From the NCBI GenBank assembly GCA_002269645.1, contig NIVC01000907.1:62001-126000 (forward strand): a DNA stretch of 64,000 bases, written 5' to 3'. Source of the stretch: Macrostomum lignano (taxonomy: Eukaryota). Shown piece by piece: positions 1 to 34,614 of the stretch. Position 1 is the first letter of the stretch. The number at the start of each line of letters is the position of its first letter. Made by a program: the position numbers and the translations under genes. Under the pieces are notes generated by a model that made no database searches, was not told where the DNA came from, and was given only the letters and a program-made list of their open reading frames with translations.

Positions 1-3000
1 CTGGGACTCTACTGACTGGGACTCTACTGACTGGGACTATACTGACTGGGCCTCTGCTGACTGGGACTCTACTGACTGGGCCTCTGCTGACAGGGACTCT
101 ACGGACTGGGCCTCTGCTGACTGGGACTCTACTGACTGGGACTCTACTGACTGGACTCTACTGACTGGGACTCTGCTGACTGGGACTCTACTGACTGGGA
201 CTCTACTGACTGGGACTCTACTGACTGGGACTCTACTGACTGGGACTCTACTGACTGGGACTCTGCTGACTGGGACTCTACTGACTGGGACTCTACTGAC
301 TGGGACTCTACTGACTGGGCCTCTGCCGACTGGGACTCTACTGACTGGGACTCTACTGCAGGACTGGGCCTCTGCCGACTGGGACTCTACTGACTGGGCC
401 TCTGCTGACTGGGACTCTACTGACTGGGACTCTGCTGACTGGGACTCTACTGACTGGTACTCTACTGACTGGGACTCTACTGACTGGGACTCTACTGACT
501 GGGACTCTACTGACTGGGACTCTACTGACTGGGACTCTACTGACTGGGACTCTACTGACTGGGACTCTACTGACTGGGCCTCTGCCGACTGGGACTCTAC
601 TGACTGGGACTCTACTGCAGGACTGGGCCTCTGCCGACTGGGACTCTACTGACTGGGACTCTACTGACTGGGCCTCTGCTGACTGGGACTCTGCTGACTG
701 GGACTCTACTGACTGGGACTCTATGACTGGGACTCTGCTGACTGGGACTCTACTGACTGGGACTCTACTGACTGGGACTCTACTGACTGGGCCTCTGCTG
801 ACTGGGACTCTACTGACTGGGCCTCTGCCGACTGGGACTCTACTGACTGGGACTCTACTGCAGGACTGGGCCTCTGCCGACTGGGACTCTACTGACTGGG
901 ACTCTACTGACTGGGCCTCTGCTGACTGGGACTCTGCTGACTGGGACTCTACTGACTGGGACTCTATGACTGGGACTCTGCTGACTGGGACTCTACTGAC
1001 TGGGACTCTACTGACTGGGACTCTACTGACTGGGCCTCTGCTGACTGGGACTCTACTGACTGGGCCTCTGCTGACTGGGACTCTACTGACTGGGCCTCTG
1101 CTGACTGGGACTCTGCTGACTGGGACTCTACTGACTGGGACTCTACTGACTGGGACTCTACTGACTGGGCCTCTGCTGACTGGGACTCTACTGACTGGGA
1201 CTCTATGACTGGGACTCTGCTGACTGGGACTCTACTGACTGGGACTCTACTGACTGGGACTCTACTGACTGGGCCTCTGCTGACTGGGACTCTACTGACT
1301 GGGCCTCTGCCGACTGGGACTCTACTGACTGGGACTCTACTGCAGGACTGGGCCTCTGCCGACTGGGACTCTACTGACTGGGACTCTACTGACTGGGCCT
1401 CTGCTGACTGGGACTCTGCTGACTGGGACTCTACTGACTGGGACTCTATGACTGGGACTCTGCTGACTGGGCCTCTGCTGACTGCGACTCTACTGACTGG
1501 GCCTCTGCTGACTGGGCCTCTGCTGACTGGGACTCTACTGACTGGGCCTCTGCCGACTGGGACTCTACTGACTGGGACTCTACTGCAGGACTGGGCCTCT
1601 GCCGACTGGGACTCTACTGACTGGGACTCTACTGACTGGGCCTCTGCTGACTGGGACTCTGCTGACTGGGACTCTACTGACTGGGACTCTATGACTGGGA
1701 CTCTGCTGACTGGGACTCTACTGACTGGGCCTCTGCTGACTGGGACTCTACTGACTGGGCCTCTGCTGACTGGGACTCTACTGACTGGGCCTCTGTTGAC
1801 TGGGACTCTGCTGACTGGGACTCTACTGACTGGGACTCTACTGACTGGGACTATACTGACTGGGCCTCTGCTGACTGGGACTCTACTGACTGGGCCTCTG
1901 CCGACTGGGACTCTACTGACTGGGACTCTACTGCAGGACTGGGCCTCTGCGACTGGGACTCTACTGACTGGGACTCTACTGACTGGGCCTCTGCTGACTG
2001 GGACTCTGCTGACTGGGACTCTACTGACTGGGACTCTATGACTGGGACTCTACTGACTGGGACTCTACTGACTGGGACTCTACTGACTGGGACTCTGCTG
2101 ACTGGGACTCTGCTGACTGGGACTCTACTGACTGGGCCTCTGTGACTGGGACTCTGCTGACTGGGACTCTACTGACTGGGACTCTACTGACTGGGACTAT
2201 ACTGACTGGGCCTCTGCTGACTGGGACTCTACTGACTGGGCCTCTGCTGACTGGGACTCTACTGACTGGGACTCTGCTGACTGGGACTCTACTGACTGGG
2301 ACTCTACTGACTGGACTCTACTGACTGGGACTCTGCTGACTGGGACTCTACTGACTGGGACTCTACTGACTGGGACTCTACTGACTGGGACTCTACTGAC
2401 TGGGACTCTACTGACTGGGACTCTGCTGACTGGGACTCTACTGACTGGGACTCTACTGACTGGGACTCTACTGACTGGGCCTCTGCCGACTGGGACTCTA
2501 CTGACTGGGACTCTACTGCAGGACTGGGCCTCTGCCGACTGGGACTCTACTGACTGGGCCTCTGCTGACTGGGACTCTACTGACTGGGACTCTGCTGACT
2601 GGGACTCTACTGACTGGGACTCTACTGACTGGGACTCTACTGACTGGGACTCTACTGACTGGGACTCTACTGACTGGGACTCTACTGACTGGGACTCTAC
2701 TGACTGGGACTCTACTGACTGGGACTCTACTGACTGGGCCTCTGCCGACTGGGACTCTACTGACTGGGACTCTACTGCAGGACTGGGCCTCTGCCGACTG
2801 GGACTCTACTGACTGGGACTCTACTGACTGGGCTCTGCTGACTGGGACTCTGCTGACTGGGACTCTACTGACTGGGACTCTATGACTGGGACTCTGCTGA
2901 CTGGGACTCTACTGACTGGGACTCTACTGACTGGGACTCTACTGACTGGGCCTCTGCTGACTGGGACTCTACTGACTGGGCCTCTGCCGACTGGGACTCT

Positions 3001-6000
3001 ACTGACTGGGACTCTACTGCAGGACTGGGCCTCTGCCGACTGGGACTCTACTGACTGGGACTCTACTGACTGGGCCTCTGCTGACTGGGACTCTGCTGAC
3101 TGGGACTCTACTGACTGGGACTCTATGACTGGGACTCTGCTGACTGGGACTCTACTGACTGGGACTCTACTGACTGGGACTCTACTGACTGGGCCTCTGC
3201 TGACTGGGACTCTACTGACTGGGCCTCTGCTGACTGGGACTCTACTGACTGGGCTCTGCTGACTGGGACTCTGCTGACTGGGACTCTACTGACTGGGACT
3301 CTACTGACTGGGACTCTACTGACTGGGCCTCTGCTGACTGGGACTCTACTGACTGGGCCTCTGCTGACTGGGACTCTACTGACTGGGCCTCTGCTGACTG
3401 GGACTCTACTGACTGGGACTCTACTGACTGGGCCTCTGCTGACTGGGACTCTACTGACTGGGACTCTACTGACTGGGCCTCTGCTGACTGGGACTCTACT
3501 GACTGGGACTCTACTGACTGGGACTCTACTGACTGGGCCTCTGCTGACTGGACTCTACTGACTGGGCCTCTGCTGACTGGGACTCTACTGACTGGGCCTC
3601 TGCTGACTGGGACTCTACTGACTGGGCCTCTGCTGACTGGACTCTACTGACTGGGCCTCTGCTGACTGGGCCTCTGCTGACTGGGACTCTACTGACTGGG
3701 CCTCTGCGACTGGGACTCTACTGACTGGGACTCTACTGCAGGACTGGGCCTCTGCCGACTGGGACTCTACTGACTGGGACTCTACTGACTGGGCCTCTGC
3801 TGACTGGGACTCTGCTGACTGGGACTCTACTGACTGGGACTCTATGACTGGGACTCTGCTGACTGGGACTCTACTGACTGGGCCTCTGCTGACTGGGACT
3901 CTACTGACTGGGCCTCTGCTGACTGGGACTCTACTGACTGGGCCTCTGTGACTGGGACTCTGCTGACTGGGACTCTACTGACTGGGACTCTACTGACTGG
4001 GACTATACTGACTGGGCCTCTGCTGACTGGGACTCTACTGACTGGGCCTCTGCTGACAGGGACTCTACGGACTGGGCCTCTGCTGACTGGGACTCTACTG
4101 ACTGGGACTCTACTGACTGGACTCTACTGACTGGGACTCTGCTGACTGGGACTCTACTGACTGGGACTCTACTGACTGGGACTCTACTGACTGGGACTCT
4201 ACTGACTGGGACTCTACTGACTGGGACTCTGCTGACTGGGACTCTACTGACTGGGACTCTACTGACTGGGACTCTACTGACTGGGCCTCTGCCGACTGGG
4301 ACTCTACTGACTGGGACTCTACTGCAGGACTGGGCCTCTGCCGACTGGGACTCTACTGACTGGGCCTCTGCTGACTGGGACTCTACTGACTGGGACTCTG
4401 CTGACTGGGACTCTACTGACTGGTACTCTACTGACTGGGACTCTACTGACTGGGACTCTACTGACTGGGACTCTACTGACTGGGACTCTACTGACTGGGA
4501 CTCTACTGACTGGGACTCTACTGACTGGGACTCTACTGACTGGGCCTCTGCCGACTGGGACTCTACTGACTGGGACTCTACTGCAGGACTGGGCCTCTGC
4601 CGACTGGGACTCTACTGACTGGGACTCTACTGACTGGGCCTCTGCTGACTGGGACTCTGCTGACTGGGACTCTACTGACTGGGACTCTATGACTGGGACT
4701 CTGCTGACTGGGACTCTACTGACTGGGACTCTACTGACTGGGACTCTACTGACTGGGCCTCTGCTGACTGGGACTCTACTGACTGGGCCTCTGCCGACTG
4801 GGACTCTACTGACTGGGACTCTACTGCAGGACTGGGCCTCTGCCGACTGGGACTCTACTGACTGGGACTCTACTGACTGGGCCTCTGCTGACTGGGACTC
4901 TGCTGACTGGGACTCTACTGACTGGGACTCTATGACTGGGACTCTGCTGACTGGGACTCTACTGACTGGGACTCTACTGACTGGGACTCTACTGACTGGG
5001 CCTCTGCTCACTGGGACTCTACTGACTGGGCCTCTGCTGACTGGGACTCTACTGACTGGGCCTCTGCTGACTGGGACTCTGCTGACTGGGACTCTACTGA
5101 CTGGGACTCTACTGACTGGGACTCTACTGACTGGGCCTCTGCTGACTGGGACTCTACTGACTGGGACTCTATGACTGGGACTCTGCTGACTGGGACTCTA
5201 CTGACTGGGACTCTACTGACTGGGACTCTACTGACTGGGCCTCTGCTGACTGGGACTCTACTGACTGGGCCTCTGCCGACTGGGACTCTACTGACTGGGA
5301 CTCTACTGCAGGACTGGGCCTCTGCCGACTGGGACTCTACTGACTGGGACTCTACTGACTGGGCCTCTGCTGACTGGGACTCTGCTGACTGGGACTCTAC
5401 TGACTGGGACTCTATGACTGGGACTCTGCTGACTGGGCCTCTGCTGACTGCGACTCTACTGACTGGGCCTCTGCTGACTGGGCCTCTGCTGACTGGGACT
5501 CTACTGACTGGGCCTCTGCCGACTGGGACTCTACTGACTGGGACTCTACTGCAGGACTGGGCCTCTGCCGACTGGGACTCTACTGACTGGGACTCTACTG
5601 ACTGGGCCTCTGCTGACTGGGACTCTGCTGACTGGGACTCTACTGACTGGGACTCTATGACTGGGACTCTGCTGACTGGGACTCTACTGACTGGGCCTCT
5701 GCTGACTGGGACTCTACTGACTGGGCCTCTGCTGACTGGGACTCTACTGACTGGGCCTCTGTGACTGGGACTCTGCTGACTGGGACTCTACTGACTGGGA
5801 CTCTACTGACTGGGACTACTGACTGGGCCTCTGCTGACTGGGACTCTACTGACTGGGCCTCTGCTGACTGGGACTCTACGGACTGGGCCTCTGCTGACTG
5901 GGACTCTACTGACTGGGACTCTACTGACTGGACTCTACTGACTGGGACTCTGCTGACTGGGACTCTACTGACTGGGACTCTACTGACTGGGACTCTACTG

Positions 6001-9000
6001 ACTGGGACTCTACTGACTGGGACTCTACTGACTGGGACTCTGCTGACTGGGACTCTACTGACTGGGACTCTACTGACTGGGACTCTACTGACTGGGCCTC
6101 TGCCGACTGGGACTCTACTGACTGGGACTCTACTGCAGGACTGGGCCTCTGCCGACTGGGACTCTACTGACTGGGCCTCTGCTGACTGGGACTCTACTGA
6201 CTGGGACTCTACTGACTGGGACTCTACTGACTGGGACTCTACTGACTGGGACTCTACTGACTGGGACTCTACTGACTGGGACTCTACTGACTGGGACTCT
6301 ACTGACTGGGACTCTACTGACTGGGACTCTACTGACTGGGACTCTACTGACTGGGCCTCTGCCGACTGGGACTCTACTGACTGGGACTCTACTGCAGGAC
6401 TGGGCCTCTGCCGACTGGGACTCTACTGACTGGGACTCTACTGACTGGGCCTCTGCTGACTGGGACTCTGCTGACTGGGACTCTACTGACTGGGACTCTA
6501 TGACTGGGACTCTGCTGACTGGGACTCTACTGACTGGGCCTCTGCTGACTGGGACTCTACTGACTGGGCCTCTGCTGACTGGGACTCTACTGACTGGGCC
6601 TCTGTGACTGGGACTCTGCTGACTGGGACTCTACTGACTGGGACTCTACTGACTGGGACTCTACTGACTGGGCTCTGCTGACTGGGACTCTACTGACTGG
6701 GCTCTGCTGGGACTCTACGGACTGGGCCTCTGCTGACTGGGACTCTACTGACTGGGACTCTACTGACTGACTCTACTGACTGGGACTCTGCTGACTGGGA
6801 CTCTACTGACTGGGACTCTACTGACTGGGACTCTACTGACTGGGACTCTACTGACTGGGACTCTACTGACTGGGACTCTGCTGACTGGGACTCTACTGAC
6901 TGGGACTCTACTGACTGGGACTCTACTGACTGGGCCTCTGCCGACTGGGACTCTACTGACTGGGACTCTACTGCAGGACTGGGCCTCTGCGACTGGGACT
7001 CTACTGACTGGGCCTCTGCTGACTGGGACTCTACTGACTGGGACTCTGCTGACTGGGACTCTACTGACTGGGACTCTACTGACTGGGACTCTACTGACTG
7101 GGACTCTACTGACTGGGACTCTACTGACTGGGACTCTACTGACTGGGACTCTACTGACTGGGACTCTACTGACTGGGACTCTACTGACTGGGCCTCTGCC
7201 GACTGGGACTCTACTGACTGGGACTCTACTGACTGGGCCTCTGCTGACTGGGACTCTGCTGACTGGGACTCTACTGACTGGGACTCTATGACTGGGACTC
7301 TGCTGACTGGGACTCTACTGACTGGGACTCTACTGACTGGGACTCTACTGACTGGGCCTCTGCTGACTGGGACTCTACTGACTGGGCCTCTGCCGACTGG
7401 GACTCTACTGACTGGGACTCTACTGCAGGACTGGGCCTCTGCCGACTGGGACTCTACTGACTGGGACTCTACTGACTGGGCCTCTGCTGACTGGGACTCT
7501 GCTGACTGGGACTCTACTGACTGGGACTCTATGACTGGGACTCTGCTGACTGGGACTCTACTGACTGGGACTCTACTGACTGGGACTCTACTGACTGGGC
7601 CTCTGCTCACTGGGACTCTACTGACTGGGCCTCTGCTGACTGGGACTCTACTGACTGGGCCTCTGCTGACTGGGACTCTGCTGACTGGGACTCTACTGAC
7701 TGGGACTCTACTGACTGGGACTCTACCGACTGGGCCTCTGCCGACTGGGACTCTACTGACTGGGCCTCTGCTGACTGGGACTCTACTGACTGGGCCTCTG
7801 CTGACTGGGACTCTACTGACTGGGACTCTACTGACTGGGCCTCTGCTGACTGGGACTCTACTGACTGGGACTCTACTGACTGGGCCTCTGCTGACTGGGA
7901 CTCTACTGACTGCGACTCTACTGACTGGGACTCTACTGACTGGGCCTCTGCTGACTGCGACTCTACTGACTGGGCCTCTGCTGACTGGGACTCTATGACT
8001 GGGCCTCTGCTGACTGGGACTCTACTGACTGGGCCTCTGCTGACTGCGACTCTACTGACTGGGCCTCTGCTGACTGGGCCTCTGCTGACTGGGACTCTAC
8101 TGACTGGGCCTCTGCCGACTGGGACTCTACTGACTGGGACTCTACTGCAGGACTGGGCCTCTGCCGACTGGGACTCTACTGACTGGGACTCTACTGACTG
8201 GGCCTCTGCTGACTGGGACTCTGCTGACTGGGACTCTACTGACTGGGACTCTATGACTGGGACTCTGCTGACTGGGACTCTACTGACTGGGCCTCTGCTG
8301 ACTGGGACTCTACTGACTGGGCCTCTGCTGACTGGGACTCTACTGACTGGGCCTCTGTTGACTGGGACTCTGCTGACTGGGACTCTACTGACTGGGACTC
8401 TACTGACTGGGACTATACTGACTGGGCCTCTGCTGACTGGGACTCTACTGACTGGGCCTCTGCTGACAGGGACTCTACGGACTGGGCCTCTGCTGACTGG
8501 GACTCTACTGACTGGGACTCTACTGACTGGACTCTACTGACTGGGACTCTGCTGACTGGGACTCTACTGACTGGGACTCTACTGACTGGGACTCTACTGA
8601 CTGGGACTCTACTGACTGGGACTCTACTGACTGGGACTCTGCTGACTGGGACTCTACTGACTGGGACTCTACTGACTGGGACTCTACTGACTGGGCCTCT
8701 GCCGACTGGGACTCTACTGACTGGGACTCTACTGCAGGACTGGGCCTCTGCCGACTGGGACTCTACTGACTGGGCCTCTGCTGACTGGGACTCTACTGAC
8801 TGGGACTCTGCTGACTGGGACTCTACTGACTGGTACTCTACTGACTGGGACTCTACTGACTGGGACTCTACTGACTGGGACTCTACTGACTGGGACTCTA
8901 CTGACTGGGACTCTACTGACTGGGACTCTACTGACTGGGACTCTACTGACTGGGCCTCTGCCGACTGGGACTCTACTGACTGGGACTCTACTGCAGGACT

Positions 9001-9820
9001 GGGCCTCTGCCGACTGGGACTCTACTGACTGGGACTCTACTGACTGGGCCTCTGCTGACTGGGACTCTGCTGACTGGGACTCTACTGACTGGGACTCTAT
9101 GACTGGGACTCTGCTGACTGGGACTCTACTGACTGGGACTCTACTGACTGGGCCTTTGCTGACTGGGACTCTACTGACTGGGCCTCTGCTGACTGGGACT
9201 CTACTGACTGGGCCTCTGCCGACTGGGACTCTACTGACTGGGCCTCTGCTGACTGCGCCTCTGCTGACTGCGACTCTACTGACTGGGCCTCTGCTGACTG
9301 GGACTCTACTGACTGGGCCTCTGCTGACTGGGACTCTACTGACTGGGCCTCTGCTGACTGGGCCTCTGCTGACTGGGCCTCTGCTGACAGGGATTCTTCG
9401 GACTGGGCCTCTGCTGACTGGGACTCTACTGACTGGGCCTCTGCTGACTGGGACTCTATGACTGGGCCTCTGCTGACTGGGACTCTACTGACTGGGCCTT
9501 TGCTGACTGGGACTCTACTGACTGGGCCTCTGCTGACTGGGACTCTATGACTGGGCCTCTGCTGACTGGGACTCTACTGACTGGGCCTCTGCTGACTGGG
9601 ACTCTATGACTGGGCCTCTGCTGACTGGGACTCTACTGACTGGGCCTTTGCTGACTGGGACTCTACTGACTGGGCCTTTGCTGACTGGGACTCTACTGAC
9701 TGGGCCTCTGCTGACTAGGCCTCTGCTGACTGGGCCTCTGCTGACTGGGCCTCTGCTGACTGGGCCTCTGCTGACAGGGATTCTTCGGACTGGGCCTCTG
9801 CTGACTGGGACTCTTCTGAC
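1..9820. repeat. 15-bp minisatellite array (consensus ACTGACTGGGACTCT; variants GGGCCTCTGC, ...GCAGGACTGG...), open at the left window edge
   Basis: Directly visible 15-nt period for about 9.8 kb; explains all TGTLL/DWDST/SRVPV ORFs. Confidence 0.98.
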
Positions 9821-10882
9821 TCGAATTCTGCAGACTCTTATCATTTCTCTTATCATTTTGTATGAGATATGACATATTAAATTCGGATTCCATTCTAAGA
9901 CATACATGTAATAAAAAGTCTATAAGAGGAACTTGTATGTATTATTTGGTTAAAATTTAAGTTCCACTATGTTCTGAAGGTTCATTGTTTGTCATATTTT
10001 TTGGGTTTTACTTAGTTAATTGTACATGTATTTTTTCTTGATTTAATGTACATGAGCCAACCCCCTCAATTTGCTAACCCCACCCCACGTTAAATAATAA
10101 TTAAAAAAGGCGTGATTTTTGGTAAGCGTGTTTTTGCTAACTTGTTTGTTTTGTTTGCGTTCGCGAGAACGCAGAGGTATTGAAGGCTACAGACATCCGA
10201 TTTTGCCTACTTAATTACTTGTTGGTTTCGAAGAGTTAGTCGATTTAACACACTATACTCGTACTAAAAATGGTTTGTCGGTAGATATATGTGATCGATT
10301 TTTTAATTTTCGACTAAATTTGTACAAAATTTTATGTTGCCAGCTCAGTGCCGCTTCCTGAAAGCAGGGCCAACGGTCATGTGCTTCTGTCACGTTCGAT
10401 AGCGCCTTCTTGAGTTGTTTTGCATCGAACTTGGAATCTAAGAGCTTCAGAGATTAAGAGCTTGTCAATCATGAAACTCTGTTTAGCTAGTATAGTATAT
10501 GAGTATAGTATATAGTATATGTAGTATATGAACATTTACAGGTAGATTTTTAGGAGATTTTGGAGGAACCGCAAAAGATTGAGATTTTGTTGTCATGGTA
10601 ACGAACAAAAGTCCGTATGAACAGCCTCCAGCGTGCCAGCACACAGCTCAAAAGCAGATGGATTGCATCTAAGCCAGTTTCGCTTATTTTTGCAGGCGTG
10701 GAGAAAATTTCAAATCTTAGTTAACGCCATGCGAATTAACTCTGCTTCATCAATCAAACTCAATCCAGGGACATGAAAATTTATTGCAACCTGAGCAGAA
10801 AGTCGAATAATTTTCTGGGAGCTGCTTGACAAGCAGTGCGTGATTTAAACGATTGCAGCCGTGTTTTATGGGATCTTGAATC

Positions 10883-10890
10883 TATAAATA
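10883..10890 (+). promoter_or_regulatory. TATA box (TATAAATA) of peptide gene copy 1; also at 15203-15210 and 21253-21260
   Basis: TATAAATA about 90 nt upstream of the signal-peptide ATG, identical in all three copies. Confidence 0.6.
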
Positions 10891-10977
10891 TAACACTGAG
10901 CAATGGCACAAAATCAAGCCTACAAATCCTCCTACAAGATTATCGGCTGCAACAAGTTCACATCTTCAAGAAACAGC

Positions 10978-11127
10978 ATGCGAGTTCTGTTTGCTCTGTT
11001 GGTCCTCATCGTTGCGCTGTTGGCAACTGTAAATGCAGATGATCTCTGTGGTCCACTCTGTTACTGCATAAACGAGATCTGCCTCGGTGATTCGCCGTCA
11101 TGCAAGGGCGACACTTGCAGGAGGTAG
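10978..11127 (+). CDS. Small secreted cysteine-rich peptide precursor, copy 1 (49 aa: MRVLFALLVLIVALLATVNA / DDLCGPLCYCINEICLGDSPSCKGDTCRR)
   Basis: Classic 20-aa hydrophobic signal peptide ending VNA; 29-aa mature part with 6 Cys and C-terminal RR; TATA upstream; AATAAA at 11228-11233. The internal ATG at 10978 is preferred over the ORF-track start at 10903. Confidence 0.8.
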   Translation: MRVLFALLVLIVALLATVNADDLCGPLCYCINEICLGDSPSCKGDTCRR

Positions 11128-11227
11128 AGATGAAAAGCAACGAGTTCTATTCTGCGTTCTGCACAGCTCACGCCGTCAGAATGCTACTGACAATACTTAC
11201 TGAAAGATCTCTGTGTGGAATATGAAA

Positions 11228-11233
11228 AATAAA
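11228..11233 (+). terminator. Polyadenylation signal AATAAA of the peptide gene (also in copies 2 and 3)
   Basis: AATAAA 100 nt after the stop, followed by a T/GT-rich stretch. Confidence 0.55.
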
Positions 11234-11328
11234 CAGTGACTTTTCGAATATCCGAGTTCACTTCGGTGATTGCATTAAGCGCTGTTTCTTGGCTTTTCTT
11301 GTTTTGGGGAAGAAACTCTGAGAGCAAA

Positions 11329-11522
11329 GGGGATGTCAACTTAAGCACCAGAATGGAGCCCGAAGTTCAGCTCCGGACCAAACCGACTGCAATCGATAAC
11401 TTGTCGGCCCAGACGACTAGAATCGCCGAGACATCCCATCCGGGTCCCTTCCTTGGGGTCCCAGGGGATAAAGGGGATAAAATGGGAATCTCATGTCAAC
11501 TTAAGTCTCTAGAATGGAGCCC
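11329..11522 (+). repeat. Left TIR of element copy 1 (one complete about 160-bp sub-repeat plus the start of a second)
   Basis: Reverse complement of about 13538-13729 with few mismatches; ATGTCAACTTAAG at 11333 and 11493. Confidence 0.9.
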
Positions 11523-11678
11523 AAAGCAAGGCTCCGGATGCTTTTTTAAACAAAATGAAACGGTATGGTCATTAGTTTGCAGAAAGGGTTTTTGTGTAAA
11601 CATTCTCGCAGATGATCCCATGGGTCTCTTTATACTTGCAGCAGGGCTCCAAGGACAACTAAGTTTAATGAAGTGACT

Positions 11679-12420
11679 TCAGTGGTCCTTGGATTGCTCA
11701 TGAACGAATGGATTGTAGTTTTTTGGAACTCTCATGTCGTCCAGCTTATTCCATACTCTATCTTTCAGGACACAAGATGTATAGTGCCCTTCCAAGGGCG
11801 TACTATACCGTAATGGGACACTGTGAACATTGGACATCCCAAGCTGGAGATGTTACCTGCTCGGATTGTCCAACAGACTTGCGTATTCAGTTTTTGACCA
11901 TCGGTTCCAATGCGATCTATATGCATCAGGGTCACTCTGCCGTTAGAGACCTGATCAGCTGCACAGTTGGTGTTGGTGCATGGGACGTGCTTTGGTGCCG
12001 TAAAAGCAGCGTAGAGACCGTCTAGAATTAACGGCGCGGTTGAAAACTCCTGCAAGGAGATGCTGAGGATACGACTATCCAGAACTCCTATGGGCAGCTC
12101 ATCCGTGCTAGTCAGGCAACTACCGCACGTGTAAATTCGATTAGGCAATGACGCTGCTGCTGCGACTCTGGCAGAATGCACTGTTAGCAGCAGTGTTGCT
12201 GTCTTGGCGCAAACTGCTGCGGATATCGGCTTCGGTTGGCTTCGAAAAGTTGATCTACGCTTGCTCAGTCGCCATAGACGTCATCAGGTTTGTCATTGCG
12301 ATGTTCACTGCCCACCTCTGAGCGGCTGAAAGAGCTGGACTTTGCTGCTGATGCAGTGAAGCAGTGCAAAAACAATTGCGTAGCACTGCTGACCATGGTT
12401 TTGAAGACCAAAGACTCTTG
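11679..12420 (-). pseudogene. USP/peptidase C19 (ubiquitin C-terminal hydrolase)-like domain inside the transposon, split over several frames
   Basis: In order on the minus strand: Cys box GLQNHGQQCY (12409-12380), fingers-like TCGSC...CTNTNC, LMHIDRIGTDGQKLNTQV, VSHYG, then after a frameshift the His box GHYTSCVLKDRVWNKLDDMRV (from 11789). Stop at 11679-11681, ATTAAA about 10 nt downstream. Confidence 0.75.
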
Positions 12421-12600
12421 AAGACTGAGGCTTGGATCCTGAGCTTCTGCTGGCTGACTGAAACGCCTCTTGCTGGCCGCTAAACTGTTGCTCAGTAGGC
12501 TTTCGCTGCTGTGGTAAAGCATTTTCTCTGGCATGAAGACTGGCAACAAGGAAGGCTGCGTGGAAGAGCGGAATCAACAAAGCGAAGGCTAGTACCAGAC

Positions 12601-13467
12601 CTTCGATAGCTATCTTGGTGGTAAGCGTAGCAGCCCAGGAGTTTGAGCACTGCCATTACATGACAATCGCAGCCTGCAGTCCTACCTCCAGCTTTTGCTG
12701 ACGAGTAGTAGCCATGAAGAAGTTGCAATCCTGGATCTCTAAAACCAAAGCGATTGTCCGCTGCTGTCACTCACTCTTAAGAATCACGCGGTAGGATTTC
12801 GAATTATGGCGCGAGAAAACGACAGCTAGAAAAAATCCAAGACGGATGCCACCGACCGAATCGGTTGCTCCAGTTTTCTGGCTGCGTCTCTTACCGAAAC
12901 TTCCAATACTTGAGGTGGCTCGGAAGTTCGGATGTGAGCGACTCAAAGTCTCTCCAGGAGTCACCTTCGTAGACCGAGAACCTCATTGACACGAATGTTT
13001 TGAATGTAATCATCGGCTTGATATAGTTGATACGGACCCACCGAAACATCTGTCAAATTCTGTGTGAATTCGGGGAACCCCGAGCTTTTTGGATCCAGCG
13101 GGTTTTCGGCAATCCATGCCGTTGTGTTAGCAGGGGGGACACGCGTCAGATCACAGTTGAAGTGCAGCTGCTCAATTTCGTCCAGTTTATTGGACAAGAG
13201 CACTCGGCGCATGAACTTCTGACCGAATTCGAACAACGATAGCCCTGTCCATGACGTTGGCAGCTGTTTAAATGATTCAAAACGTGGAAACGCCCGATTG
13301 TACTTTGCCATCGAGTTCTCGATAACGTCTAATTGGCTGCGCTCGCTGAAGCCGGCTGACTGCAGCCACTGATTCGGTTTGTGCCTCTCGTTAAAACATT
13401 TGTCCTGCCTAATGGCAGCAAAGCAGCACTCAATGACATACCGGAACATAGTGGCACAGCGAATGTC
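12601..13467 (-). pseudogene. C-terminal half of a DDE transposase (PIF/Harbinger-ISL2EU-Spy-clade-like) with SWIM-like zinc finger, probably spliced
   Basis: DIRCATMFRYVIE resembles the R...RWxVE region holding the third catalytic residue; GPYQLYQADDY; FSRHNSKSYRVIL; GYYSSAKAGGRTAGCDCHVMAVL resembles WYCxCKxGxRxVGCCxHV. Plausible GTAAGA...TTTTCTAG intron at 12894-12826. The 5' part is missing. Confidence 0.7.
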
Positions 13468-13729
13468 TCGGCGATTCTAGTCGTCTGGGCCGACAAGTTA
13501 TCGATTGCAGTCGCTTTGGTCCCGAGCTGAACTTCGGGCTCCATTCCAGAACCTTAAGTTGACATGAGATCCCCATTTTATCCCCTTTATCCCCTGGGAC
13601 CCCAAGGAAAAGACCCGGATGGGATGTCTCGGCGATTCTAGTCGTCTGGGCCGACAAGTTATCGATTGCAGTCGGTTTGGTCCGGAGCTGAACTTCGGTC
13701 TCCATTCTGGTGCTTAAGTTGACATCCCC
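13461..13729 (-). repeat. Right TIR region of element copy 1, two tandem about 161-bp sub-repeats
   Basis: ATGTCTCGGCGATTCTAGTCGTCTGGGCCGACAAG at 13463 and 13624. Confidence 0.9.
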
Positions 13730-13785
13730 TTTCGTGCTTTCACGAACTTCTGAGAGCAGCTCTGAGAGTAAAGTCGTAATTAAAA

Positions 13786-14141
13786 ACTCTACTGACTGGG
13801 CCTCTACTGACTGCGACTCTACTGACTGGGCCTCTGCTGACTGGGCCTCTGCTGACTGGGACTCTACTGACTGGGCCTTTGCTGACTGGGACTCTACTGA
13901 CTGGGCCTCTGCTGACTGGGACTCTACTGACTGGGACTCTGCTGACTGGGACTCTACTGACTGGTACTCTACTGACTGGGACTCTACTGACTGGGACTCT
14001 ACTGACTGGGACTCTACTGACTGGGACTCTACTGACTGGGACTCTGCTGACTGGGCCTCTGCTGACTGGGACTCTACTGACTGGGCCTCTGCTGACTGGG
14101 CCTCTGCTGACTGGGCCTCTGCTGACTGGGACTCTTCTGAC
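13786..14141. repeat. 15-bp minisatellite, short array (about 24 units)
   Basis: Same ACTGACTGGGACTCT unit with the same entry (TAAAAACTCT) and exit (GACTCGAATTC) sequences. Confidence 0.97.
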
Positions 14142-15297
14142 TCGAATTCTGCAGACTCTTATCATTTCTCTTATCATTTTGTATGAGATATGACATATTA
14201 AATTCGGATTCCATTCTAAGACATACATGTAATAAAAAGTCTATAAGAGGAACTTGTATGTATTATTTGGTTAAAATTTAAGTTCCACTATGTTCTGAAG
14301 GTTCATTGTTTGTCATATTTTTTGGGTTTTACTTAGTTAATTGTACATGTATTTTTTCTTGATTTAATGTACATGAGCCAACCCCCTCAATTTGCTAACC
14401 CCACCCCACGTTAAATAATAATTAAAAAGGCGTGATTTTTGGTAAGCGTGTTTTTGCTAACTTGTTTGTTTTGTTTGCGTTCGCGAGAACGCAGAGGTAT
14501 TGAAGGCTACAGACATCCGATTTTGCCTACTTAATTACTTGTTGGTTTCGAAGAGTTAGTCGATTTAACACACTATACTCGTACTAAAAATGGTTTGTCG
14601 GTAGATATATGTGATCGATTTTTTAATTTTCGACTAAATTTGTACAAAATTTTATGTTGCCAGCTCAGTGCCGCTTCCTGAAAGCAGGGCCAACGGTCAT
14701 GTGCTTCTGTCACGTTCGATAGCGCCTTCTTGAGTTGTTTTGCATCGAACTTGGAATCTAAGAGCTTCAGAGATTAAGAGCTTGTCAATCATGAAACTCT
14801 GTTTAGCTAGTATAGTATATGAGTATAGTATATAGTATATGTAGTATATGAACATTTACAGGTAGATTTTTAGGAGATTTTGGAGGAACCGCAAAAGATT
14901 GAGATTTTGTTGTCATGGTAACGAACAAAAGTCCGTATGAACAGCCTCCAGCGTGCCAGCACACAGCTCAAAAGCAGATGGATTGCATCTAAGCCAGTTT
15001 CGCTTATTTTTGCAGGCGTGGAGAAAATTTCAAATCTTAGTTAACGCCATGCGAATTAACTCTGCTTCATCAATCAAACTCAATCCAGGGACATGAAAAT
15101 TTATTGCAACCTGAGCAGAAAGTCGAATAATTTTCTGGGAGCTGCTTGACAAGCAGTGCGTGATTTAAACGATTGCAGCCGTGTTTTATGGGATCTTGAA
15201 TCTATAAATATAACACTGAGCAATGGCACAAAATCAAGCCTACAAATCCTCCTACAAGATTATCGGCTGCAACAAGTTCACATCTTCAAGAAACAGC

Positions 15298-15447
15298 ATG
15301 CGAGTTCTGTTTGCTCTGTTGGTCCTCATCGTTGCGCTGTTGGCAACTGTAAATGCAGATGATCTCTGTGGTCCACTCTGTTACTGCATAAACGAGATCT
15401 GCCTCGGTGATTCGCCGTCATGCAAGGGCGACACTTGCAGGAGGTAG
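15298..15447 (+). CDS. Secreted six-Cys peptide precursor, copy 2 (identical protein to copy 1)
   Basis: Identical translation, TATA and poly(A) context. Confidence 0.8.
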   Translation: MRVLFALLVLIVALLATVNADDLCGPLCYCINEICLGDSPSCKGDTCRR

Positions 15448-15648
15448 AGATGAAAAGCAACGAGTTCTATTCTGCGTTCTGCACAGCTCACGCCGTCAGA
15501 ATGCTACTGACAATACTTACTGAAAGATCTCTGTGTGGAATATGAAAAATAAACAGTGACTTTTCGAATATCCGAGTTCACTTCGGTGATTGCATTAAGC
15601 GCTGTTTCTTGGCTTTTCTTGTTTTGGGGAAGAAACTCTGAGAGCAAA

Positions 15649-18049
15649 GGGGATGTCAACTTAAGCACCAGAATGGAGCCCGAAGTTCAGCTCCGGACCA
15701 AACCGACTGCAATCGATAACTTGTCGGCCCAGACGACTAGAATCGCCGAGACATCCCATCCGGGTCCCTTCCTTGGGGTCCCAGGGGATAAAGGGGATAA
15801 AATGGGAATCTCATGTCAACTTAAGTCTCTAGAATGGAGCCCAAAGCAAGGCTCCGGATGCTTTTTTAAACAAAATGAAACGGTATGGTCATTAGTTTGC
15901 AGAAAGGGTTTTTGTGTAAACATTCTCGCAGATGATCCCATGGGTCTCTTTATACTTGCAGCAGGGCTCCAAGGACAACTAAGTTTAATGAAGTGACTTC
16001 AGTGGTCCTTGGATTGCTCATGAACGAATGGATTGTAGTTTTTTGGAACTCTCATGTCGTCCAGCTTATTCCATACTCTATCTTTCAGGACACAAGATGT
16101 ATAGTGCCCTTTCAAGGGCGTACTATACCGTAATGGGACACTGTGAACATTGGACATCCCAAGCTGGAGATGTTACCTGCTCGGATTGTCCAACAGACTT
16201 GCGTATTCAGTTTTTGACCATCGGTTCCAATGCGATCTATATGCATCAGGGTCACTCTGCCGTTAGAGACCTGATCAGCTGCACAGTTGGTGTTGGTGCA
16301 TGGGACGTGCTTTGGTGCCGTAAAAGCAGCGTAGAGACCGTCTAGAATTAACGGCGCGGTTGAAAACTCCTGCAAGGAGATGCTGAGGATACGACTATCC
16401 AGAACTCCTATGGGCAGCTCATCCGTGCTAGTCAGGCAACTACCGCACGTGTAAATTCGATTAGGCAATGACGCTGCTGCTGCGACTCTGGCAGAATGCA
16501 CTGTTAGCAGCAGTGTTGCTGTCTTGGCGCAAACTGCTGCGGATATCGGCTTCGGTTGGCTTCGAAAAGTTGATCTACGCTTGCTCAGTCGCCATAGACG
16601 TCATCAGGTTTGTCATTGCGATGTTCACTGCCCCACCTCTGAGCGGCTGAAAGAGCTGGACTTTGCTGCTGATGCAGTGAAGCAGTGCAAAAACAATTGC
16701 GTAGCACTGCTGACCATGGTTTTGAAGACCAAAGACTCTTGAAGACTGAGGCTTGGATCCTGAGCTTCTGCTGGCTGACTGAAACGCCTCTTGCTGGCCG
16801 CTAAACTGTTGCTCAGTAGGCTTTCGCTGCTGTGGTAAAGCATTTTCTCTGGCATGAAGACTGGCAACAAGGAAGGCTGCGTGGAAGAGCGGAATCAACA
16901 AAGCGAAGGCTAGTACCAGACCTTCGATAGCTATCTTGGTGGTAAGCGTAGCAGTCCAGGAGTTTGAGCACTGCCATTACATGACAATCGCAGCCTGCAG
17001 TCCTACCTCCAGCTTTTGCTGACGAGTAGTAGCCATGAAGAAGTTGCAATCCTGGATCTCTAAAACCAAAGCGATTGTCCGCTGCTGTCACTCACTCTTA
17101 AGAATCACGCGGTAGGATTTCGAATTATGGAGCGAGAAAACGACAGCTAGAAAAAATCCAAGACGGATGCCACCGACCGAATCGGTTGCTCCAGTTTTCT
17201 GGCTGCGTCTCTTACCGAAACTTCCAATACTTGAGGTGGCTCGGAAGTTCGGATGTGAGTGACTCAAAGTCTCTCCAGGAGTCACCTTCGTAGACCGAGA
17301 ACCTCATTGACACGAATGTTTTGAATGTAATCATCGGCTTGATATAGTTGATACGGACCCACCGAAACATCTGTCAGATTCTGTGTGAATTCGGGGAACC
17401 CCGAGCTTTTTGGATCCAGCGGGTTTTCGGCAATCCATGCCGTTGTGTTAGCAGGGGGGACACGCGTCAGATCACAGTTGAAGTGCAGCTGCTCAATTTC
17501 GTCCAGTTTATTGGACAAGAGCACTCGGCGCATGAACTTCTGACCGAATTCGAACAACGATAGCCCTGTCCATGACGTTGGCAGCTGTTTAAATGATTCA
17601 AAACGTGGAAACGCCCGATTGTACTTTGCCATCGAGTTCTCGATAACGTCTAATTGGCTGCGCTCGCTGAAGCCAGCTGACTGCAGCCACTGATTCGGTT
17701 TGTGCCTCTCGTTAAAACATTTGTCCTGCCTAATGGCAGCAAAGCAGCACTCAATGACATACCGGAACATAGTGGCACAGCGAATGTCTCGGCGATTCTA
17801 GTCGTCTGGGCCGACAAGTTATCGATTGCAGTCGCTTTGGTCCCGAGCTGAACTTCGGGCTCCATTCCAGAACCTTAAGTTGACATGAGATCCCCATTTT
17901 ATCCCCTTTATCCCTGGGACCCCAAGGAAAAGACCCGGATGGGATGTCTCGGCGATTCTAGTCGTCTGGGCCGACAAGTTATCGATTGCAGTCGGTTTGG
18001 TCCGGAGCTGAACTTCGGGCTCCATTCTGGTGCTTAAGTTGACATCCCC
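15649..18049 (-). mobile_element. 2.4-kb TIR transposon, copy 2 (transposase C-terminus, SWIM and USP-like)
   Basis: Same termini and AAA/TTT flanks; about 9 differences from copy 1, including a TGA before the His box and SRH changed to SLH. Confidence 0.85.
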
Positions 18050-18105
18050 TTTCGTGCTTTCACGAACTTCTGAGAGCAGCTCTGAGAGTAAAGTCGTAAT
18101 TAAAA

Positions 18106-20191
18106 ACTCTACTGACTGGGCCTCTGCTGACTGGGACTCTACTGACTGGGACTCTGCTGACTGGGACTCTACTGACTGGGCCTTTGCTGACTGGGACTCT
18201 ACTGACTGGGCCTCTGCTGACTGGGACTCTACTGACTGGGACTCTGCTGACTGGGACTCTACTGACTGGGACTCTACTGACTGGGACTCTACTGACTGGG
18301 ACTCTACTGACTGGGACTCTACTGACTGGGACTCTACTGACTGGGACTCTACTGACTGGGACTCTACTGACTGGGACTCTACTGACTGGGACTCTACTGA
18401 CTGGGACTCTACTGACTGGGACTCTACTGACTGGGACTCTACTGACTGGGACTCTACTGACTGGGACTCTACTGACTGGGACTCTACTGACTGGGACTCT
18501 ACTGACTGGGACTCTACTGACTGGGACTCTACTGACTGGGACTCTACTGACTGGGCCTCTGCCGATTGGGACTCTACTGACTGGGACTCTACTGACTGGG
18601 CCTCTGCTGACTGCGACTCTACTGACTGGGCCTCTGCTGACTGGGCCTCTGCTGACTGGGACTCTACTGACTGGGCCTCTGCTGACTGGGACTCTACTGA
18701 CTGGGACTCTACTGACTGTGACTCTATGACTGGGACTCTGCTGATTGGGACTCTACTGACTGGGACTCTACTGACTGGGACTCTGCTGACTGGGACTCTA
18801 CTGACTGGGTCTCTACTGACTGGGACTCTACTGACTGGGACTCTACTGACTGGGACTCTACTGACTGGGACTCTACTGACTGGGACTCTACTGACTGGGA
18901 CTCTACTGACTGGGACTCTACTGACTGGGACTCTACTGACTGGGACTCTACTGACTGGGACTCTACTGACTGGGACTCTACTGACTGGGACTCTACTGAC
19001 TGGGCCTCTGCCGACTGGGACTCTACTGTCTGGGACTCTACTGACTGGGCCTCTGCTGACTGCGACTCTACTGACTGGGCCTCTGCTGACTGGGCCTCTG
19101 CTGACTGGGACTCTACTGACTGGGACTCTACTGACTGTGACTCTATGACTGGGACTCTGCTGACTGGGACTCTACTGACTTGGACTCTACTGACTGGGAC
19201 TCTACTGACTGGGACTCTGCTGACTGGGACTCTACTGACTGGGACTCTACTGACTGGGACTCTACTGACTGGGACTCTACTGACTGGGCCTCTGCCGACT
19301 GGGACTCTACTGACTGGGACTCTACTGCAGGACTGGGCCTCTGCCGACTGGGACTCTACTGACTGGGACTCTACTGACTGGGACTCTACTGACTGGGACT
19401 CTACTGACTGGGACTCTGCTGACTGGGACTCTACTGACTGGGACTCTACTGACTGGGACTCTACTGACTGGGACTCTACTGACTGGGCCTCTGCCGACTG
19501 GGACTCTACTGACTGGGACTCTACTGCAGGACTGGGCCTCTGCCGACTGGGACTCTACTGACTGGGACTCTACTGACTGGGCCTCTGCTGACTGGGCCTC
19601 TGCTGACTGGGACTCTACTGACTGGGACTCTATGACTGGGACTCTGCTGACTGGGACTCTACTGACTGGGACTCTACTGACTGGGACTCTACTGACTGGG
19701 CCTCTGCTGACTGGGACTCTACTGACTTGGCCTCTGCTGACTGGGACTCTACTGACTGGGTCTCTGCTGACTGCGACTCTACTGACTGGGCCTCTGCTGA
19801 CTGGGACTCTATGACTGGGCCTCTGCTGACTGGGACTCTACTGACTGGGCCTTTGCTGACTGGGACTCTACTGACTGGGCCTCTGCTGACTGGGCCTCTG
19901 CTGACTGGGACTCTGCTGACTGGGCCTCTGCTGACTGGGCCTCTGCTGACTGGGACTCTGCTGACTGGGCCTCTGCTGACTGCGACTCTACTGACTGGGC
20001 CTCTGCTGACTGCGACTCTACTGACTGGGCCTCTGCTGACTGGGACTCTACTGACTGGGCCTCTGCTGACTGGGCCTCTGCTGACAGGGATTCTTCGGAC
20101 TGGGCCTCTGCTGACTGGGACTCTACTGACTGGGCCTCTGCTGACTGGGCCTCTGCTGACTGGGCCTCTGCTGACTGGGACTCTTCTGACT
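18106..20191. repeat. 15-bp minisatellite, about 2.1-kb array
   Basis: Same unit and same boundaries as the other two arrays. Confidence 0.97.
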
Positions 20192-22772: not shown

Positions 22773-23794
22773 CTACTGCGTGAAAATGAAAGAAGTTAGT
22801 TGGCAGGTTCGAGTCGACAGTGGCAGAGCAGCTCCAGGAGACTCCTGCCCTTCGCGCACGTGTCGTGCCAGCCGATCTCTCACAATGACAACCAGGGCGT
22901 CGGACGCCGCACAATGGGGCGAAATCAACGGGATGGCCGGATAGTGCAAGTCAAGGCTGATGCGGTCGCGTCGGAGGGCCAGCTCGTTGGCTTCCAGCGA
23001 GACGAGGCTGACCGATTGATGGCTGCTCAGCAGCTGGTTGGTCTTGTGGCAGTTTGTCCTCAACACCGTTGCTGATGCGTCCGGGGGGCAGACCACCTGC
23101 ACAGGCCAGATCGTCGCGTTGGGGAAGGCCTTCTTTAGGTTGCTGAAGCTCGCCTTCCAGAGTCTTGCGATGGAAAGGTCAAAGCTCTGGCGGTGGAGGT
23201 CATTGTAGCCAGCCCAGATGATGATGCGGCTGGTGGTGGGGCTCGCGTTCTCGACTCTGCAGATACTTTTGATATAGTCCAGCGTGAGGTCGGGAAAGCA
23301 GTGCACGTCCAAGTCCGGAGACTTGAAGGGTTTTCACGAACTTCACGTTTTGGTCCGCGATCACCAGGGTGGGCGTCTGTCTCGATCTCAGGTGCCAGTT
23401 CTTTTTTGAGCCACCGTGGAAGATGACGTTGGGAATTCTCGGCTTCCCTGTGCGTTTCTTGAAGCAAGACGGCACTGGGGCGGAGGTGGGCAAGACGTTC
23501 GGCTAATTCCGTTTGGCGTGCCTGCAGCCCGTTGCAGTTGAGCTGCAGGATGTGGAGTTCTCGGCCACGCTTGATGCTCCGTTTGTGCGTCATTTTACTG
23601 CGCTTCTCCTTCGGCTGCTCTTCACTGGCGTGGCCGCCGCGGAGTCTGTGGACGGTATAGATTCCTGCAATATCTTCGGTATCGGCACTCTCGTGGTGGA
23701 TGTCCGGGGCTTTAGTTGCGTAGTATTCCTGTTGGTCACGACACTTCGTCGTCTCCATGATGATACGGGACACGTCCGGCGGCCCGTCAGGCAA
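22773..23794 (-). mobile_element. Degenerate non-LTR retrotransposon-like fragment: AP-endonuclease N-terminus followed by an SGNH/GDSL esterase domain
   Basis: LHILQLNCNGL...AVLLQETH is the APE motif I/II signature. TLVIADQNV (block I-like), VHCFPD, IIIWAGYNDL (GxND) and RDRISLDLHY are SGNH-like. Two frameshifts; no RT seen. Confidence 0.65.
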
Positions 23795-24002
23795 GGCAGC
23801 CGTCCTGGACGTGGGTCGCGTGAAGGGGGTCGCTTGTCATGGGTCGGTGCTGGCCGGCCCACTCCGCACGATTTTGCAACTCGGTCAGACGGTTGCCTTT
23901 AGTGCGGACCCCTCTCCGCACCTTAGTGTGGACCCTTCTCATGCACTCGGTCCAGTGTATAAGAAATCACTGGACTTTCTCATGCCCTGCTGCTGGTGCT
24001 GC

Positions 24003-33250: not shown

Positions 33251-34614
33251 TTACTCGAGCCGCTCGGGCTCATCCTCAGCTTCAGCCTGTGGCCGGTTGA
33301 CTATAGCCTGGTGCTGCTGGTGATTTGGTGACTCTTGATGAGGATGCAGCAGCTGCTGGTGCTGCTGGTGCTGCTGGTGCTGCTGGTGCTGCTGGTGCTG
33401 CTGGCGCGAGCAGTACGAGTGCAGCTGCAGCTGCTCAGTCCTGGCCCTGGCAGCTCTGGATTCGGCATCACACTTGCATGTCAGGATCAGCCTGAAGTAC
33501 TTTTTGAACTTCGAGCTGATAAGCAGCAGGCAGAGAGGGTTAATTGCGCTGTTGGCGTAGCTCATCAGCAGCGTGATTGGCAGGGCCGTTGTCATGGCAA
33601 CGTAGACGCGCCCCACCTGGCTGTCGTTTGCGTTTGCTGCTGAAGGCTCGGTGGCGTTGCCGGTGGAGAGCAGCTCGGAGCCGCGCAGCTGGCGCAGGTC
33701 CATGTAGATCATGACTACGTAATGCGGCAGCCAGCACACGGCGAAGGCCATCAGCAGGGCGATCATCATCTTGCTGACCTTGACTCGCCCCCGGCTCACT
33801 GCGCGGAGGCTGTTCTGGTGCGTCTCGTTGGTCACCTGTCGAGTGAACTTTACCGTGGAGACGAGAGTGCGGCCCAGCATTGAGTAGAAGATGGCCATGG
33901 CGATGAGGGGGGCCATGTACAGTGCGATGAACAGGAACAGCGTGTAGGCAAGCTTGTTGGCTGGCGATGCCCACTCCTCCTGGCAGGACAGGATGGAGGT
34001 CTTCCAGAACAGCTGGTGCTCGGTGATCCGGTGCACGGCAGCGATGGGGCTGCTAATGAGAGCGGCGAGAGTCCAAATGGCCGCCATCCAGAGGCACATG
34101 ACCCGGTTGGAGAGTCGCTCCTTGGCCGTCATGGGGTAGCGGATCACCAGGTAGCGCTTGATGGACATGGAAGCCAAGGAGCCGATGCTGACGCACACAG
34201 AGACACACTGCAGGAAGGGAGACAGCTTGCAGAGGGCCACACCAAGGTGCCAGCGCGTCTGCAACAGGTTGTAGACGGTGATCGGCACGCAGACGAGGAA
34301 CACCAGCAGATCGCTGACGGCCAGGTTCAGCAGGAAGATGTTGGTGCGAGAGCGCATTGAAGGGAACAGCAGAATGCTGAAGATGACGAGGAAGTTGCCG
34401 AGGACGCCACAGGCGAACAGCATGCGAGGGCGGTGATCATGCCCAGCTTGAAGCCCATGCCCTGATTCTCGAAGTAGTCGTCCAGCATATTTCGACAGAA
34501 CTCGGACTGCTCCATCTCGATGTAGCAGCGGTTGAATGTGTTCAACCGGGCGCTCAAGTCATCTTGCGACATGTTGGCGCCCGCGGCGCCGAGCTTCTCG
34601 AACAGGCTGGTCAT
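33251..34614 (-). CDS. Intronless class A (rhodopsin-like) neuropeptide GPCR, orexin/allatotropin-receptor-like; one 1-nt frameshift near 34425
   Basis: TM1 GVLGN, TM2 LNLAVSD, WHLGVALCKL, ECL2 CQEEW, TM6 CWLP, TM7 YANSAINP, poly-Q tail. The N-terminus (MTSLFEK..., sequon NMS) is in the overlapping ORF 34327-34614. The subfamily call is by resemblance only. Confidence 0.9.

Follow-up and report, generated by a model that had tools for sequence, protein, structure and literature searches.

In a stretch of 64,000 nucleotides of the flatworm Macrostomum lignano (positions 62,001 to 126,000 of contig NIVC01000907.1, here C907, in assembly GCA_002269645.1; this whole stretch is called the window), a DNA transposon carries the remains of a transposase joined to a deubiquitinase of the ubiquitin-specific protease (USP, peptidase C19) class. 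Very probably the window contains a tandem-duplicated, dead and non-autonomous copy of a Spy-type (PHIS) element, the relatives of which are autonomous elements encoding a transposase-USP fusion. A first-pass annotation, made from the letters of the window, had postulated an autonomous parent with its own deubiquitinase, and such parents were found in the same genome. What appears to be new is that a DDE transposase of Spy type bears a deubiquitinase belonging to the USP class; transposon deubiquitinases as such are already known.

The assembly, comprising 764,410,778 bp in 5,269 contigs, was subjected to six-frame protein searches with the first open reading frame (ORF) of the window element and with its USP piece as queries. 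Both queries matched the same 1,022-codon frame on contig C3075, with 68% identity for the first ORF and 50% for the USP piece, and both matched the same uninterrupted 995-codon frame at at least 12 loci, with 57% and 42% identity. Counted from the first ATG, the proteins P0001 and P0002 consist of 988 and 978 amino acids (aa), each encoded by a single intron-less frame, and both score above threshold for the Pfam domain UCH. The intact layout comprises an N-terminal C2H2 finger, an HTH_Tnp_4-like domain, a DDE core, a degenerate SWIM-like module and a low-complexity linker, after which the USP domain forms the C-terminus. An autonomous parent type, with transposase and USP in one protein, exists. 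The elements harboring the 995-codon frame measure about 5.3-7.1 kb (L023 2249-9310 is an example), the autonomous relatives in general being about 6-7 kb in size. The 995-codon-frame elements are 99.5% identical to one another and end in inverted arrays of a unit of about 161 bp, with 6.7 units in one array of L023 and 12.7 in the opposite one. The same unit occurs in the window copy, the terminus of which is GGGGATGTCAACTTAAGCACC; the P0001 element shows diverged subrepeats and the terminus GGGGATGTGAACTTAAG. Termini of the family read GGGGATGT(C/G)AACTTAAG, and the element ends are also written as GGGGATGTCAACTTAAG....

Just beyond the left end of the P0001 element, at L021 1420-2490 (C3075), an ORF of about 355 aa for a mariner-like transposase was observed, and it is also present at L025. 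L021 and L025 are 98%-identical copies of one locus, and the transposase-USP frame of L025 is interrupted, only 663 aa of it being left open. Further subfamilies with about 45-55% protein identity and open frames of 400-600 codons occur on many contigs, for example C422, C1332, C1171, C197, C212 and C793, suggesting that the flatworm genome holds a diversified set of these elements.

Nearly all elements have AAA next to one end and TTT next to the other, and a few copies show TAA/TTA. When the joined flanks of six insertions were searched against the genome, those of three (two full-length copies and the window copy) gave contiguous matches of 180 bp. These empty sites (L027-L032) read ...AAATTT..., with nothing duplicated or lost, and the paralogous empty sites for the first window copy (L030-L032) are unbroken as ...GAGAGCAAATTTCGTGC.... 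Window and full-length copies inserted between AAA and TTT without target-site duplication, the feature by which Spy elements are defined (PMC4122938), and the intact copies display the single long ORF with N-terminal HTH and DDE transposase that characterizes this group. Spy-type insertion is shown here for the M. lignano families; the metagenomic relatives on L033-L036 are represented by single contigs without a second copy. The window element had been predicted to be a DNA transposon of PHIS/Spy kind bounded by terminal inverted repeats (TIRs), and this is supported by its empty sites and by inverted arms of 213 nt (11326-11538 and 13520-13732, which include the flanking host triplets) that are 94% complementary. 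On the basis of target site and ORF we would call the family Spy-related (PHIS), the tree described below having been calculated without named Spy, ISL2EU or PIF references. The 99.5% identity between full-length copies, together with the coexistence of filled and empty sites, indicates recent activity.

These data also bear on the idea that the genes of about 980 aa are domesticated host genes, that is transposase-derived deubiquitinases rather than active transposons. As would suit host genes, the reading frames are long and unbroken and there is constraint between families, but the ORFs reside in TIR-bounded units at many unrelated loci with differing flanks and with the near identity given above, empty sites exist, and deletion derivatives with the same ends have spread, so that domestication appears very improbable.

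By tblastn the window copy covers residues 366-976 of P0001, the first about 365 codons being deleted; the match starts at 13461, and the same breakpoint is found in other copies. On the minus strand, 13476-11679 is a chain of stop-free stretches in differing frames with internal stops. The motifs listed in the first-pass annotation (RYVIE, GPYQLYQADDY, GLQNHGQQCY, two Cys pairs, VSHYG and GHYTSCV..W..LDD) were all recovered on one strand in collinear order, as was a stop codon followed by ATTAAA at the end of the unit. As a coding unit, the predicted gene is not supported: remnants of the fusion are present, but in this copy they are 5'-deleted, spread over several frames and interrupted by stops. 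The transposase remnant corresponds to residues 366-671 of P0001; it has kept the catalytic E (RYVIE), has lost both catalytic D residues, the HTH domain and the C2H2 finger, and includes a degenerate SWIM-like stretch, ..GCDCHVMAVLKLLGCYAY... Collinear after it, the USP remnant corresponds to residues 777-976 and agrees with the USP signature, having a Cys box with the oxyanion Asn five residues before the catalytic Cys, two zinc-ribbon Cys pairs, a His box and an Asp after a conserved Trp. Separate window pieces, short and broken as they are, gave no match to Pfam. Once stitched together, the USP part shares 48% identity with the domain of P0001 (E = 3e-82), but on Pfam UCH (PF00443) it reaches 18.3 bits and stays under the cut-off of 23.9. 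The expected UCH match was obtained with P0001 (42.5 bits) and with P0002, where it scores 37.5 bits and covers positions 2-237 of the 254 in the profile, and not with the window copy. The window copy is a dead, 5'-deleted, frameshifted and non-autonomous relic without functional importance of its own.

A GT-AG intron of 61 nt at 12600-12540 had been proposed to join the SWIM-like region in frame to the USP part. The span encodes RSGTSLRFVDSALPRSL, homologous to NSGARVRFVDSVLPRVL of P0001, the intact relatives read as a continuous ORF across this point, and when eleven non-autonomous copies are reduced to a majority consensus, one frame of 229 codons runs from the SWIM-like region through the linker to the Cys box. 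The intron is therefore rejected; the change of frame is caused by a 4-bp CCTT duplication (12555-12548) that is missing from nine of ten other copies.

Searching the genome with the DNA of the window element yielded at least 46 matches with 84-100% identity. In each of ten copies examined, a terminal repeat is followed by an identical 5' breakpoint and, after about 2.2 kb of internal sequence, by the second terminal repeat. As truncated copies with this breakpoint are located at several loci with differing flanks, the truncated form must itself have transposed. Seven copies of about 100% identity on C907 and C3333 have common flanks, which points to their origin by duplication of a host repeat unit. 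According to the proposed history, the window form would have lost its first about 365 codons and then spread to many loci, an autonomous relative presumably having mobilised it in trans; frameshifts and stops would have accumulated after this spread.

In order to characterize the protease part, an alignment (A1) of twelve USP regions was prepared from the two flatworm families, a JGI fragment and metagenomic relatives. The catalytic Cys is conserved wherever its column is present, the His, the Asp and three of the zinc-ribbon Cys columns are invariant, and the fourth is nearly so. Catalytic Cys, oxyanion Asn, His and Asp pair are kept across lineages with 16-38% identity. A family profile searched against PDB matched 105 sequences, all of them USPs, with USP46/USP12 as best matches at E ~ 1e-24. 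The structure check suggested with the first-pass annotation was carried out on the intact P0001 domain rather than on the window copy, and the AlphaFold2 model obtained (pLDDT 87.6, pTM 0.85) showed a USP fold: in a Foldseek search against PDB the top 50 matches were all USP catalytic domains (E about 1e-16 to 1e-14, TM 0.63-0.72), among them USP21, USP8, USP46, USP18 and USP2. From this model it is predicted that the domain folds as a USP.

Inactive proteins of USP fold are known, and the domain might likewise be catalytically silent or not a protease, binding ubiquitin or a ubiquitin-like protein and thereby steering the transposase to ubiquitinated chromatin (H2A/H2B-Ub, damage sites). Such a role would suit a domain that is unusually small (about 265 aa) and far from cellular USPs (13-19% identity in fold alignments; phmmer E of 0.01 against single PDB USPs). 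However, the retention of the catalytic residues at such low overall identity is the pattern expected of an active enzyme, and those Helentron VTD domains that have been tested are active (PMC9741609). A silent module is for these reasons considered unlikely.

Concerning the transposase part, an exhaustive HMMER scan of P0001 against 1.84 billion representative proteins resulted in 202 matches; a word-indexed search of 5.8 billion proteins with the same query returned nothing at E <= 1e-3. On P0001, the N-terminal C2H2 finger was matched by Pfam, and HTH_Tnp_4 gave 25.4 bits, just under its cut-off of 27. The weaker phmmer matches, with E from about 1e-10 to 1e-5, are genuine proteins of the DDE_Tnp_4 plus HTH_Tnp_4 type; they score 49-79 bits on DDE_Tnp_4, and D201, D295 and E376 of P0001 align with their triad, E376 being the residue carried by RYVIE in the window. 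In a maximum-likelihood tree the flatworm proteins fall into a clade of 20 sequences (support 100/100), apart from the canonical DDE_Tnp_4 proteins. This clade has, with few outliers, the spacing D(92-95)D(74-102)E, and the canonical sister group has D(77-82)D(47-53)E, near the Spy signature. The SWIM-like motif noted earlier in the window is correct as regards homology but not as regards an intact finger. C.C...GCCxH is preserved in the relatives, one of which, P0072, reaches a sub-threshold 17 bits on SWIM at the same place as ..GCDCH.. in the flatworm; in the M. lignano family the first CxC ligand pair has been lost (YYS-TS...GCDCH or GCDSH), and no match to Pfam SWIM (PF04434) was obtained. 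Judged by these residues, the flatworm region appears to be a degenerate SWIM homologue and not a functional finger.

The same fusion was found outside the flatworm. In sequences from TARA Oceans, other ENA assemblies and a Logan run, a transposase with C-terminal UCH is encoded in at least five further deep metagenomic lineages, represented by P0010 (1,048 aa, from a 20-member cluster), P0015 (955 aa), P0037 (1,119 aa), P0051/P0062 (1,639 and 1,842 aa) and P0116 (1,134 aa). These proteins are 24-29% identical to P0001 and are distributed over two of the three subclades of the tree, and UCH scores of 47.2, 46.9 and 38.9 bits were obtained for P0010, P0015 and P0037, respectively. The recurrence of the fusion in several deep lineages argues against a one-off capture. 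Gene capture by DNA transposons is common, and the window copy, fragmentary and without a Pfam match, could by itself be taken for a chance juxtaposition or a single transduplication of a host USP fragment with no autonomous fusion element behind it; with intact ORFs containing both parts at at least 12 loci and in a second family, and with the same architecture in several deep lineages, this explanation is hardly conceivable and was rejected.

On the ENA metagenome contig L033 (187-5154, P0010 family) a 585-codon frame with C2H2 fingers and low-complexity sequence is followed by an in-frame stop (1942-1944) and then by the transposase-USP frame. In the intact relative P0051 the C2H2/low-complexity part and the transposase-USP part lie in one ORF. 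The stop in L033 might mean that the copy is a pseudogene, that readthrough takes place or that a variant genetic code is in use.

Several observations weigh against the reading of a Spy-type transposase that works together with an active deubiquitinase. P0001 and P0002 both have D(93)D(80)E, which lies outside the D(79-80)D(44-62)E spacing published for Spy, and the Spy terminal motif 5'-GGANNNNG-3' is not matched, only its leading GG being in agreement. Pfam DDE_Tnp_4 gives no direct match on P0001. When the AlphaFold2 model of the transposase core (pLDDT 82.5) was used for a fold search against PDB, no significant match was obtained; the best was Tn5 transposase (E = 0.028), and the other weak matches, a PIWI domain and retroviral integrases, are like it RNase-H-like (E about 0.03 or above). 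A profile search of the transposase against PDB sequences revealed no relative either, and to our knowledge no structure of a PHIS transposase has been solved. On the supporting side, the nonsynonymous divergence (dN) between P0001 and P0002 amounts to 0.24 for the DDE core and 0.54 for the USP region and reaches 1.37 for the linker, indicating that the USP part is constrained, though less than the core; as the synonymous divergence (dS) is saturated, the comparison is confined to dN between domains. Copy numbers may be too high, the assembly being known to contain redundant sequence (PMC5730564). Intact copies with the same terminus carry the USP, as would be expected if it belongs to the family, but a nested subclade of relatives (P0005, P0007, P0008, P0009 and P0014) is without it; on contig L035, which encodes P0007, the ORF ends directly after the SWIM region and the remaining 830 bp contain no USP-like sequence. 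The protease is therefore dispensable for at least some lineages, and the distribution fits early acquisition with later loss and repeated gain alike. Finally, both the activity of the USP and its role in transposition are inferred, the activity from the conserved catalytic residues and from the precedent of the Helentron VTD domains.

Within the preferred reading, in which an autonomous Spy-type element encodes transposase and USP together, HTH domain and zinc finger would bind the subterminal 161-bp repeats, the DDE core would perform cut-and-paste transposition, and the USP would travel with the transposase as an active deubiquitinase. It might strip ubiquitin from the transposase and so prevent its proteasomal turnover, or, alternatively, it might remove ubiquitin from chromatin or from repair factors at sites of excision or integration. 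Helentron VTD deubiquitinases cleave ubiquitin and NEDD8 and have been proposed to guard transposition proteins from proteasomal degradation (Erven et al., PMC9741609). More tentatively, and with less than even confidence, we propose that there is a widespread, undescribed Spy-related clade, present in one flatworm and in several eukaryote lineages of marine metagenomes, with an active USP fused to the DDE transposase, that deubiquitination is required for or strongly boosts transposition, and that one family is still mobile in M. lignano.

The features of the window element are compiled in Table 1.

Table 1. Positions of the Spy-type element and of its coding remnants in the window
Feature	Position	Strand	Remarks
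Copy 1, non-autonomous, internally deleted Spy-type element, 2,401 bp	11329..13729	-	host AAA 11326-11328, TTT 13730-13732
Termini of copy 1			GGGGATGTCAACTTAAGCA
Copy 2	15649..18049	-	flanks identical to copy 1; from tandem duplication of a 4,320-bp host unit
5' TIR arm (relative to ORF)	13520..13729	.	about 1.3 units of the ~161-bp subrepeat
Partial extra subrepeat unit	13463..13546	.	spacing 161; adjoins deletion breakpoint at start of coding remnant
3' TIR arm	11329..11538	.	
Transposase remnant	12552..13461	-	tblastn; frameshifts and stops
4-bp CCTT duplication, CCTTCCTT	12548..12555	-	shifts frame between SWIM-like region and linker/USP
USP (peptidase C19) domain remnant	11697..12420	-	several frames, internal stop
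Cys box GLQNHGQQCY	12409-12380	-	Cys codon 12385-12383
His box GHYTSCV...W..LDD		-	His codon 11786-11784, Asp pair 11741-11736

The subrepeat in the 5' arm is the same unit as in the full-length elements, and the true element ends are those given for copy 1 in the table. Copies 1 and 2 differ at nine positions and are offset by the length of the duplicated unit. Host sequence at about 10180-18820 consists of a tandem repeat of about 4.3 kb, which is likewise present in C907 at 33-52 kb and in C3333 at 38-65 kb. Units of 4.3 kb without the transposon were located at C907:33341, 36913 and 39853 and at C3333:53965, 58058, 61259 and 64237. As filled and empty units coexist, the insertion is older than part of the array expansion, or it was spread by unequal exchange. 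Each 4.3-kb unit in the window contains a small ORF, MRVLFALLVLIVALLATVNADDLCGPLCYCINEICLGDSPSCKGDTCRR, at 10900-11127 (+) and 15220-15447 (+), which resembles a signal peptide followed by a Cys-rich peptide. The transposon-bearing units are embedded in arrays of a 15-bp satellite (CTGGGACTCTACTGA) at 1-9821, 13786-14142 and 18106-20191 of the window; the first array contains about 650 copies, and the satellite has a GC content of about 58% and a strong AT skew.

Elsewhere in the window, an open frame at 23135-23836 (-) has an apurinic-endonuclease-like start (..HILQLNCNGLQARQTELAERL..) typical of a fragment of a non-LTR retrotransposon. A 435-codon open frame at 33251-34558 (-) resembles seven-transmembrane receptors of the rhodopsin family (..NLAVSDLL.., ..NPLCLL..) and terminates in a poly-(QH) tail. 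Many short-period tandem arrays with periods of 13-17, 21, 41 and 72 bp extend over 30.4-63 kb, for example at 35873-38102 and 61805-63041.

With USP and DDE transposase in one polypeptide, conserved across lineages of 25-30% identity, and with close relatives without USP as natural controls, the family is a clean case. Since it includes a young family, of which many copies are intact, in an animal amenable to experiment, a role of deubiquitination in cut-and-paste transposition would be directly testable. The little-studied Spy group is extended to flatworms, with another DDE spacing and with TIRs built from subrepeats. If the proposal is true, the family would offer a test bed for the repeated acquisition of deubiquitinases by mobile elements and possibly a tool for integration without target-site duplication, transgenesis of M. 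lignano having already been developed.

The first-pass annotation did not recognise a USP on a PHIS/Spy-type transposase as a known architecture. This stands for the PHIS group, since in full-text literature, Repbase and Dfam lying outside the search, no report was found of a USP or UCH domain on a PHIS, Spy, ISL2EU or Harbinger transposase, and the Spy/PHIS papers (PMC4122938, PMC4482050) mention neither ubiquitin nor protease nor SWIM; for transposons in general it does not, as OTU and VTD domains in Helitron-like elements and UCH (PF00443) in HLE2 subgroups have been published (PMC9741609; PMC11417382). With Spy elements (PMC4122938, PMC4482050) the family shares insertion between AAA and TTT without duplication, one long ORF in which an N-terminal HTH precedes a DDE domain probably related to IS5/PIF-Harbinger (DDE_Tnp_4), a highly variable TIR length and TIRs beginning with GG. 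It differs from them in the DDE spacing of its clade, which is D(92-95)D(74-102)E as opposed to D(79-80)D(44-62)E, in its terminus (GGGGATGT... versus GGANNNNG), in TIRs made of tandem 161-bp subrepeats, a structure not reported in the Spy paper, and in the additional N-terminal C2H2 finger and C-terminal USP domain. With cellular USPs (USP46/USP12, USP21, USP2, USP8, USP18) the domain has in common the palm-thumb-fingers fold, at the TM values given above, both the Cys and the His box, the Asp and a zinc ribbon with four Cys, whereas its identity to them is as low as 13-19% and it is minimal, without accessory domains and fused to a transposase.

Proteases for ubiquitin or ubiquitin-like modifiers have been picked up independently in mobile elements that work by unrelated mechanisms: herpesvirus tegument proteins, Helentrons (OTU, VTD, UCH) and MULEs (Ulp1). 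Ulp1/SENP (C48) proteases occur in MULE and other cut-and-paste elements and, as in the family described here, link a protease for a ubiquitin-like modifier to a DDE transposon; they belong, however, to clan CE and not to CA/C19, their likely substrate is SUMO and not ubiquitin, and Ulp1 is often encoded by a separate ORF. Helentron and HLE2 elements with OTU, VTD or UCH domains (PMC9741609, PMC11417382) resemble the M. lignano family in stably carrying a papain-fold deubiquitinase with conserved catalytic residues within the transposition protein, but there it accompanies a RepHel HUH endonuclease-helicase and rolling-circle transposition, whereas here the protease is placed C-terminal to the core of a DDE cut-and-paste transposase.

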